The translations under genes and the position numbers were made by a program. The notes under the pieces were generated by a model. It saw only the letters and a program-made list of their open reading frames with translations. It had not been told where the DNA came from and searched no databases. 64,000 nucleotides of DNA from Camelus ferus (taxonomy: Eukaryota), in NCBI RefSeq assembly GCF_009834535.1, contig NC_045713.1:21824001-21888000 (forward strand), given 5' to 3'. Positions 5,596-6,980 of this stretch are shown piece after piece (position 1 is the stretch's first letter; the number at the start of each line of letters is the position of its first letter).

Positions 5596-6870
5596 ATGGC
5601 GGCGTCCTGTGGGCTTTGGGACTGAGGACCCGAGCCGCTGGGCCGCTGTCCTGAAGCGCCACCCGGAGGTGCTGAGGGCGCGCGCGGGCCCTCGGGGACG
5701 GCTGGAAGCCCTGGACAGATGATAGGGCTGTGGAAGGATCGAGCGGGCGGGCGACTTTCTTTGTCCGGACTCCCCGTCACCGCCCTTCCCCAGGTATCGA
5801 GAGGAGTTGCCTGCGGCCATCAAGGGCCGAGTAGAGAAGCATGTGACACTAGATGACCTGGAGCAGTTGCTGGCGTGGAAACTGGCAGTGAGGCGCTTCC
5901 CACGTGGAGGGTGGAGTCTCCTCCCGGGGCGGGGCACAGCCACGTGGGCGTGACTTCCTTCTGGGCGGGCCCTCCTCCTTGAGGCGGACCCTCACGGCGT
6001 GGGCGTGGCTTCCTCCTGGGAGCCGGGACCCCGACGAGGTCTACCAACCCTGAACCCTGACACGACCTGGCCACAGAGGGGCCTTTTCCGGCCGCGCCTG
6101 CAGCAACTCGTGACCGTCAACTCCCCGGAGCTGGTGGTGCAGCGTTCGGCCGCCGCTTTCCGCCTCCTGCCAGACATGCACGCAGCGGTCATGGAATTGT
6201 GCGCTCTCCAGGGTGTGGGCCCCGCTACTGCCTTGGGTTAGTCGGGAGACCTGGGCACTCCGGCGGGGTTGCGGGCGGGACCTGGCCTATTAGCGTCCTT
6301 ATCTGTGAAGTTGCCTAACGGCTACGCACGTGACACCACACCGAGATCATTGGTAAGGGTGGCCCCAGGCTGAGTCTGTCCTGGGACTGATGGGGCCTGA
6401 ATGCTGGCCCTTCACTGCCCGCAGCGATCCTGGCTGCTGGAGCTCCCGAGGTGGCCGCTTTCATGTCTGAGGAGGCAGTGGCCGCAGTGCCTGGTTTGCC
6501 AGCCCTGCAGTACACTCTCAAGCACTATCTGCTGTACTTGTGCAGGGTGCAAGAGCGTGCCACAGCCCTGAGCCGAGGTGAGGAGACTGACGATGGTGGC
6601 CAGGGAGGGCATCCAGGACCCTGGTCAGGGTAGAGTGGGCACAGCTATCCAGCAGGGTAGGGTGGCCAGGGGCCCTGAGACCCAGACTCCCTCTGCTCCT
6701 CCCTAGGCAGGGCCTCAGGGCTGTGGACCCCTCACCACATGGAGACAGCACTGTGGACATGGGCTATGGGGCAGAAGCTGTGCCCTGATCTACTGCCTGA
6801 TCTCAGTCCCAGCCCAGCCACCCCCGACGACACCAGGCCAGCCAAGAAGCGCAGGACCCAGGTGGACTAA
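5596..6870 (+). pseudogene. Unnamed 5-exon gene for a ~231-aa HhH (DNA-glycosylase-like) protein with NLS; exon 1 disrupted
   Basis: Exons 5596-5721, 5794-5887, 6077-6236, 6425-6577, 6707-6870. Exons 2-5 are open, phase-compatible and GT-AG. HhH motif LCALQGVGPATA and C-terminal PAKKRR. The ATG at 5596 is out of frame with the rest of exon 1, and the intron-1 donor reads AT instead of GT. AATAAA at 6975. Confidence 0.8.
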
Positions 6871-6974
6871 CTTGGCTGTGGCCCAGAACCTGCTCACCTG
6901 CCATATGACCTTAGGCTGCAAGTGTCTCTGGACAGCAGGCTGGCAGAGCAGGAGGCTGGCTGCTGCAGAAGCTC

Positions 6975-6980
6975 AATAAA
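6975..6980 (+). terminator. Polyadenylation signal of the divergent HhH gene
   Basis: AATAAA ~105 nt after TAA at 6868-6870. Confidence 0.7.

Follow-up and report, generated by a model that had tools for sequence, protein, structure and literature searches.

Does the interval between STUB1 and its rhomboid neighbour in Camelus ferus contain an intact gene for a nuclear protein related to DNA glycosylases, or the remains of one? The question is raised by positions 5596-6980 (+ strand) of a 64,000-nucleotide stretch of contig NC_045713.1 (assembly GCF_009834535.1, positions 21,824,001 to 21,888,000; hereafter the window), in which a first-pass annotation had spliced by hand a hidden five-exon gene for a helix-hairpin-helix (HhH) protein of about 231 amino acids. 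The candidate gene lies between STUB1 and a rhomboid gene, both on the - strand, the latter of which is presumed to be RHBDL1 from its place beside STUB1. The answer proposed here, to which we assign a probability of about 0.7, is that the Camelus locus is a recently inactivated unitary pseudogene of a conserved gene for an all-helical, HhH-GPD-like nuclear protein; at best, it would be a remnant whose N-terminus has been exchanged, as the RefSeq model of Camelus bactrianus has it.

The locus is the Camelus orthologue of a conserved five-exon, 232-codon gene; it is an orthologue, not an intact member. Intact 232-amino acid orthologues with exons of 128, 94, 160, 153, and 164 nt are found in the STUB1/RHBDL1 interval of hippo, cow, and zebra, and the order STUB1(-), gene(+), RHBDL1(-) is kept in these three species as well as in dromedary and alpaca. 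Homologues with a conserved reading frame at syntenic positions, which the first-pass annotation had named as a check on its proposal, do therefore exist. Exons 2 (5794-5887, 94 nt), 3 (6077-6236, 160 nt), and 4 (6425-6577, 153 nt) of the window have canonical AG/GT borders, exon 5 (6707-6870, 164 nt) has an AG acceptor, and all four agree in length and phase with their counterparts in the intact orthologues. Their phases also agree with one another, and the joined frame is open for 189 codons; the TAA stop is located at 6868-6870, and an AATAAA polyadenylation signal (6975-6980) follows 105 nt 3' of it. Since the same exon structure, together with intact proteins, is present at the syntenic position in hippo, cow, and zebra, the match of the exons is far beyond chance. 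Exon 3 encodes the block WK.ARG.FRPRL and, from about 6206, the HhH motif (LxxLxGVGPATA); exon 4 contributes a Gly/Pro-rich loop followed by an acidic pair within FMSEE (E143 at 6469-6471), and exon 5 the last helix and the basic tail KKRR (6844-6855). Protein identity to other ungulates amounts to 75-85%. In C. bactrianus XP_045369394.1 (LOC105065821), the last 189 residues are 100% identical to the translation of exons 2-5, with which a C. ferus model also agrees exactly; as exons 2-5 are already carried by RefSeq, the gene is not hidden.

It is the first coding exon that is broken. Its remnant (5596-5721, ATG at 5596-5598) comprises 126 nt, as compared with 128 nt in the intact orthologues. 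A 2-bp deletion between 5622 and 5623 (GGGAC--TGAGG) produces an in-frame TGA at 5623-5625, which is codon 10, and the frame that starts at 5596 reads MAASCGLWD before it terminates. The orthologue-like remainder of the exon continues in another frame, and it is in this out-of-frame part that the codons for L37, D41, and W43, invariant from bacteria to mammals, are located. A second lesion affects the former intron-1 donor (5722-5723), where a G-to-A change has left AT instead of GT; the new A is at the same time the last base of a TGA stop in the shifted frame. With the deletion and the AT donor in place, the canonical protein cannot be made from the window DNA. The 231-amino acid product proposed earlier was a read-through of both lesions, and of the five exons spliced by hand, exons 2-5 with their phases and the AATAAA signal stand, while exon 1 does not.

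Both lesions are common to the window and Camelus dromedarius (GCA_000803125.3, 99.72% identical over 4271 nt), and according to the exon 1 alignment neither of them is present in alpaca, hippo, cow, or zebra, which dates them to the Camelus stem, later than its divergence from the lineage of alpaca. It might be objected that the gene is intact and functional, coding for a 231-amino acid HhH glycosylase-like protein, and that the frameshift is an error of sequencing or assembly; exons 2-5 are open, after all, and the out-of-frame part of exon 1 is still orthologue-like. This objection is highly improbable. An independently assembled genome of another Camelus species has the deletion and the AT donor as well, both matching to the base, and sequencing errors do not recur in this way across species and assemblies. 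In C. ferus, the ab initio model (P0263) begins MIGLW = ATGATAGGG, which implies that the donor change is present in that model, too. Furthermore, two separate errors within one exon would be unlikely, and the canonical exon 1 is annotated by no pipeline in any Camelus.

In mammals generally, the gene is a real coding gene that evolves under constraint. When camel, hippo, cow, and zebra are compared in pairs, the ratio of nonsynonymous to synonymous substitution rates (dN/dS, omega) lies at 0.21-0.28 for all six pairs, and at 0.22-0.28 for the three pairs without camel sequence. Camel and alpaca differ by 10 nonsynonymous and 5 synonymous substitutions, and the resulting omega is approximately 0.70. 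In a test based on about 15 substitutions, one of several that were carried out, this value proved compatible with 1 (p=0.56), whereas a value of 0.25 was only marginally rejected (p=0.044, one-sided). A dN/dS of about 1, for which the first-pass annotation had proposed to look, is thus not seen among camel, hippo, cow, and zebra, but it is compatible with the camel-alpaca comparison. Divergence between camel and alpaca is 2.30% in the candidate exons, 2.77% in the gene's own introns, and 0.4-1.3% in the exons of STUB1 and RHBDL1. The window and dromedary differ at two coding sites, in each case by a nonsynonymous change. Codon 127 (6233-6235, TTG) specifies Leu in Camelus, while Ser is found in every other animal and bacterial member; an invariant position is also affected by E64D, which occurs in both Camelus and alpaca, and R62L, at 5850 in exon 2, is a change specific to the window. 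Among the 24 residues that are invariant across animals and bacteria, 22 have unchanged codons in the window, with S127L and E64D being the exceptions. With a dead start exon, the loss of an invariant Ser, and near-neutral evolution in camelids, an intact gene in the camel genome, as first proposed, can no longer be maintained.

In alpaca, exon 1 and the intron-1 donor are intact. Codon 197, however, has changed from TGG to TAG (W197*) in alpaca exon 5 (L006:2614-2777), at a site equivalent to window positions 6760-6762, and this change represents a second, independent inactivating lesion in camelids. It explains why the NCBI isoforms of alpaca are either truncated there or switch frame in exon 5. 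Of two further alpaca replacements, A124T hits an invariant position; G120S lies at a site where other members have either Gly or Ala and which, hence, is not invariant. The alpaca X2 isoform (P0157) uses an internal exon 5 acceptor and ends in a tail encoded in another frame. Predicted isoforms of pig and warthog (P0156 and P0153, respectively) align to it over the full length with 75-77% identity, so that this alternative splice may predate the alpaca nonsense mutation.

The position of the locus relative to STUB1 is as had been stated in the first-pass annotation. The coding part of STUB1 (CHIP) exon 1, recognized by its translation, is located at 5111-5269 on the - strand with its start codon at 5269-5267, and the ATG of the candidate gene lies head-to-head with it at a distance of 326 bp. 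At the orthologous loci, the neighbouring gene gives CHIP_TPR_N and U-box Pfam matches. The spacing makes a promoter common to STUB1 and the candidate plausible, and the pseudogene would probably still be transcribed from or near the STUB1 CpG promoter. As to the quality of the stretch, the whole window contains 450 N, which begin at 11335, end at 63324, and are all well away from the candidate gene.

Given this arrangement, the locus might now be only a non-coding divergent transcript of the STUB1 CpG-island promoter, that is, a long non-coding RNA of the STUB1-DT type whose coding past is irrelevant. The head-to-head start, the preserved splice sites of exons 2-5, and the AATAAA signal are in line with this proposal, as is the fact that the hedgehog orthologue is labelled STUB1-DT by NCBI. 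The first-pass annotation had given the human locus as the lncRNA STUB1-DT, and the hedgehog protein bears out this label for the family. The only primate protein retrieved, a model from Pygathrix nigripes (P0181), has no start Met, its hairpin is replaced by unrelated sequence, and two conserved blocks are missing; it gives the impression of a prediction made across a degenerate copy of the gene. Such a copy would fit a non-coding annotation of the human locus and would suggest a similar fate of the gene in primates. On the other hand, a scan of positions 4500-7500 matched no Rfam family, and the exons evolve at about the rate of the introns, so that no constraint on an RNA is visible at the sequence level. 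As a complete account of the locus the proposal is improbable; moreover, it is compatible with the pseudogene explanation and not an alternative to it.

What the Camelus lineage would have lost is a member of a widely distributed family. A HMMER search of the whole library with exon 3 yielded 133 relatives, and follow-up searches raised the number of homologues to more than 300. They are annotated across mammals, reptiles, amphibians, and fish, and were also found in a crinoid, a snail, ostracods, and a springtail; the arthropod members combine the same N-terminal domain with a long tail of low complexity and a basic motif at its end. The protein is named zgc:112496 in fish, "STUB1-DT" in hedgehog, and "uncharacterized LOC..." in most species, including cow, hippo, and horse. 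The genes behind these names resemble the window locus in their position between STUB1 and RHBDL1, in their five exons, and in their phases. The intact orthologues code for 232 amino acids and have a dN/dS of about 0.2-0.3, whereas the window and the other Camelus copies are without a usable exon 1 and carry S127L. Of the fish and fungal homologues that had been suggested, the former are borne out by zgc:112496; the sole fungal match (Mycena, P0096) is a repeat protein with an hhalign probability of 0.1% and has to be regarded as spurious. Mouse 0610011F06Rik, which is mentioned in two proteomics papers, was considered as an orthologue and dropped, with no Mus or Rattus protein present among the homologues; the symbol presumably belongs to another gene of 16p13.3, Mettl26/C16orf13. 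In the literature, no characterization of a vertebrate member of the family was found, and STUB1-DT appears in an expression list only.

The family extends into bacteria. Thirty-seven credible relatives without introns were recovered from metagenome-assembled genomes (among loci L008-L046, e.g., L031:1423-1992 and L037:1477-2088), with 36-46% identity over approximately 190 residues. Most of them belong to Gemmatimonadota and others to Chloroflexota, and Steroidobacteraceae, Rhodothermales, and Rhizobium are represented by a single relative each; two are located on complete chromosomes of 5.8 and 8.4 Mb. In a quick tree of 11 bacterial loci and 38 eukaryotic members, the bacteria form one clade (Shimodaira-Hasegawa-like approximate likelihood ratio test, SH-aLRT, 100) and the vertebrate part follows the species tree. 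This distribution may reflect an ancient origin or one horizontal transfer. No conserved operon was recognized in the bacterial neighbourhoods, where the adjacent genes vary (MgsA-type ATPase, GFO/IDH/MocA oxidoreductase, ChaN, HAD hydrolase, MazE, SDR). The basic C-terminal tail is kept in animals and absent from the bacterial relatives, which fits its being a eukaryotic add-on for nuclear import. At two further loci, L043 and L044, one of which is labelled Stappiaceae "chromosome 21", family matches occur only in pieces broken by stops; these pieces resemble an intron-containing eukaryotic gene and, therefore, are probably due to eukaryotic contamination of the bins.

The HhH motif predicted from the sequence is genuine, and the KKRR tail is present as described. 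Pfam HHH is matched by 42 of 55 animal members (best E 9.2e-9), with the zebra protein scoring 24.1 bits against a cut-off of 24; exon 3 of the window reaches 17.1 bits (E 0.005). More distant profiles respond faintly. Nine of 55 animal members and 6 of 10 bacterial ones match PF21790 (OGG-like), with a top score of 24.5 bits versus a cut-off of 27 (best E 2.6e-5), and 7 of 10 bacterial members match PF19827 (DUF6308), in each case below the curated cut-off; the matches to both span the HhH and the C-terminal half. NCBIfam models gave noise-level matches only (TIGR01084 mutY, E 0.004-0.02). Neither a sequence search of the PDB with exon 3 alone nor one with the family profile returned anything below E 0.2. 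When the family profile was aligned by hhalign with Escherichia coli endonuclease III (Nth), the alignment was confined to the 21-residue hairpin (Nth 108-128; probability 17%). In it, the invariant A124 is paired with the Schiff-base Lys120 of Nth, and the hairpin Lys of the bifunctional subclass is absent; if active, the protein would thus be monofunctional. The hairpin is followed by AAGAPE..AFM[AS]DE in animals, by FFDE in bacteria, and by FMSEE in cetartiodactyls including the window. This acidic pair stands about 20 residues past the hairpin, which is the spacing expected of a catalytic Asp; the hhalign alignment to Nth ended before it. Codon 143 is Asp in at least 90% of the animal members, among them zebra, manatee, and beaver, and Glu in the cetartiodactyls read (cow, hippo, warthog, reindeer, and camelids); the bacterial members also align Glu at this position. 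In UniRef the horse protein is called "HhH-GPD domain-containing", which is an automatic source name and not a test.

AlphaFold 2 (AF2) models of the zebra protein (predicted local distance difference test, pLDDT, 88.4; predicted template modelling score, pTM, 0.84) and of a Gemmatimonas protein (pLDDT 94.2, pTM 0.90) both show a compact all-helical domain. In Foldseek searches against the PDB, the top 50 matches of the bacterial model were all HhH-GPD DNA glycosylases; those of the zebra model were HhH-GPD glycosylases, QNG1, and two DisA chains (ranks 31 and 38, probability 0.04). The matched structures include Ogg2 (3fhg and 3knt), OGG1, MutY, MagIII, AlkA, EndoIII, and QNG1, with alignments of about 200 columns, and the best probability was obtained with SsOgg 3fhg (0.97, bacterial model), while 3knt gave 0.95 and 0.80. 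On our reading, the family may plausibly be placed as a distant lineage of its own within the HhH-GPD-like fold, with membership in the strict sense being no more than putative; a non-catalytic role in nucleic acid binding is equally possible.

Several observations weigh against regarding the Camelus locus as the pseudogene of an HhH-GPD-like protein. As regards the fold, PF00730 (HhH-GPD) has no match at E<=0.1 in any of the 55 animal or 10 bacterial members, and the Foldseek matches are weak, with E of at least 0.075 and template modelling scores (TM) of at most 0.45. For the likeness to HhH-GPD proteins suggested in the first-pass annotation, the structural neighbours, nearly all of them HhH-GPD proteins, speak weakly in favour and the sequence profile does not. 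As regards the decay, the whole camel branch since the split from the other cetartiodactyls carries 19 nonsynonymous and 23 synonymous substitutions, and its omega of about 0.30 equals that of the cow branch; the relaxation would be recent or partial. The camel-alpaca value of 0.7 is by itself not separated with any strength from moderate constraint and has to be taken as an indication, not as proof. Exons 2-5 retain an open frame, canonical splice sites, and a polyadenylation signal. With approximately 1% change per lineage since the split, an open frame of 189 codons is nevertheless expected under neutral drift and is not evidence of function. Finally, with a 239-amino acid protein of C. bactrianus predicted by NCBI, a truncated or N-terminally replaced product is possible.

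This last point deserves closer consideration, since it would render the camel gene functional: transcription would start in STUB1 intron 1, and two alternative exons would be spliced to exon 2 to give the 239-amino acid protein. XP_045369394.1 has exactly this structure. Its last 189 residues are those of window exons 2-5, and 50 residues from two + strand exons, both in STUB1 intron 1, replace the ancestral N-terminus. Exon A (4646-4669, MAGIKTLE) is not homologous to the N-terminus of the family, and exon B (4872-4996) joins exon 2 in phase; both have GT donors and are identical in dromedary. The replacement would, however, discard L37, D41, and W43 along with three N-terminal helices that are modelled at pLDDT 93-98 and, hence, are confidently folded parts of the domain. 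At the ATG of exon A, alpaca has TTG and neither hippo nor cow has a counterpart; in hippo, cow, and zebra, moreover, deletions or a stop codon interrupt the A/B region. The 50-residue N-terminus may therefore be a chance open reading frame, whose look it has, or a very young recruitment of exons antisense to STUB1. S127L and the near-neutral rates likewise speak against a retained function. Functional rescue by exons A and B is, all in all, possible but unlikely.

The pseudogene explanation therefore remains the preferred one, and the following course of events is suggested. In the Camelus lineage, the 2-bp deletion and the GT-to-AT change at the donor inactivated the ancestral first coding exon. 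Exons 2-5 would have been drifting ever since, as S127L and the near-neutral dN/dS suggest, and alpaca acquired its nonsense mutation independently. That exons 2-5 are still open and can be spliced would be due to the recent date of the damage. We infer that the function was lost in camels. The intact protein of about 230 residues, in turn, would bind nucleic acid by means of the hairpin and the invariant basic block WK.RG..R, it would be imported into the nucleus by virtue of its KKRR tail, and, if catalytic, it would act as a monofunctional N-glycosylase using the acidic pair D143/E144. A bolder version of this scenario, which we consider doubtful, would have the family as an active monofunctional N-glycosylase for DNA or nucleotides in animals and a few bacterial phyla, distinct from the named HhH-GPD subfamilies and lost independently in Camelus, alpaca, and at least one primate; Camelus exons 2-5 may in this version survive with a de novo N-terminus from STUB1 intron 1.

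Summarizing, the supposedly hidden gene of the window is an annotated locus with a broken canonical frame and should not be counted as a new protein-coding gene. Conservation of the family to which it belongs reaches from bacteria to mammals; in most vertebrates the gene evolves under purifying selection, and base-excision glycosylases are nearly the only structural neighbours of its confidently predicted helical domain. Mammals appear to have lost the gene repeatedly, given that camelids have two independent sets of lesions and a colobine monkey a degenerate-looking copy; independent natural knock-outs of this kind suggest that the function is conditionally dispensable. What is new in these findings is modest, namely, the loss of the start exon in Camelus, the independent nonsense mutation in alpaca, the degenerate-looking Pygathrix model, and the extension of the family into bacteria.

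Apart from the annotated orthologues, a likeness exists to Ogg2-type 8-oxoguanine DNA glycosylases (Sulfolobus solfataricus 3fhg and Methanocaldococcus jannaschii 3knt) and to the HhH-GPD superfamily in general, which share with the family a length of about 200 residues, an all-helical architecture, the HhH, a Gly/Pro-rich stretch, and an acidic residue about 20 positions further on. With the exception of DisA, Foldseek returned almost only HhH-GPD structures for two independent family models, at probabilities of 0.80-0.97. The resemblance is remote, with an identity of 9-19% in the listed matches (12% to 3fhg) and a TM of 0.40-0.45. The invariant blocks LD.W and WK.RG..R of the family are not known to us from the classical HhH-GPD enzymes. 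To PF21790, described as putative 8-oxoguanine DNA glycosylase OGG-like, the family is linked by sub-threshold matches, and Pfam contains no separate model for it. HHpred alignments of PF21790 domains with endonuclease III are reported in bioRxiv 10.1101/2025.03.31.646159.

Two further comparisons concern a possible relative in Drosophila and a glycosylase with a different type of substrate. Drosophila Amun (CG2446), the one candidate relative that has been studied, may be the fly member and would be grouped with zgc:112496 in PANTHER PTHR21521; this link serves as a lead only. The top 120 matches of a profile search with the arthropod members were, throughout, unnamed crustacean-like proteins from metagenomic or transcriptomic data. 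Amun itself is described, in a secondary source citing Shalaby et al. (2009), as a nuclear modifier of the Notch pathway with a putative DNA-glycosylase domain. The zebra model also weakly matches the queuosine-5'-monophosphate glycosylase QNG1/DUF2419 (7u5a and 7u1o; E 1.6, TM 0.28-0.29 by query length), with no sequence similarity detected between QNG1 and the family. QNG1 has an HhH-GPD-type fold and acts on a free nucleotide, not on DNA, so that for a fold of this type a substrate other than DNA is possible.

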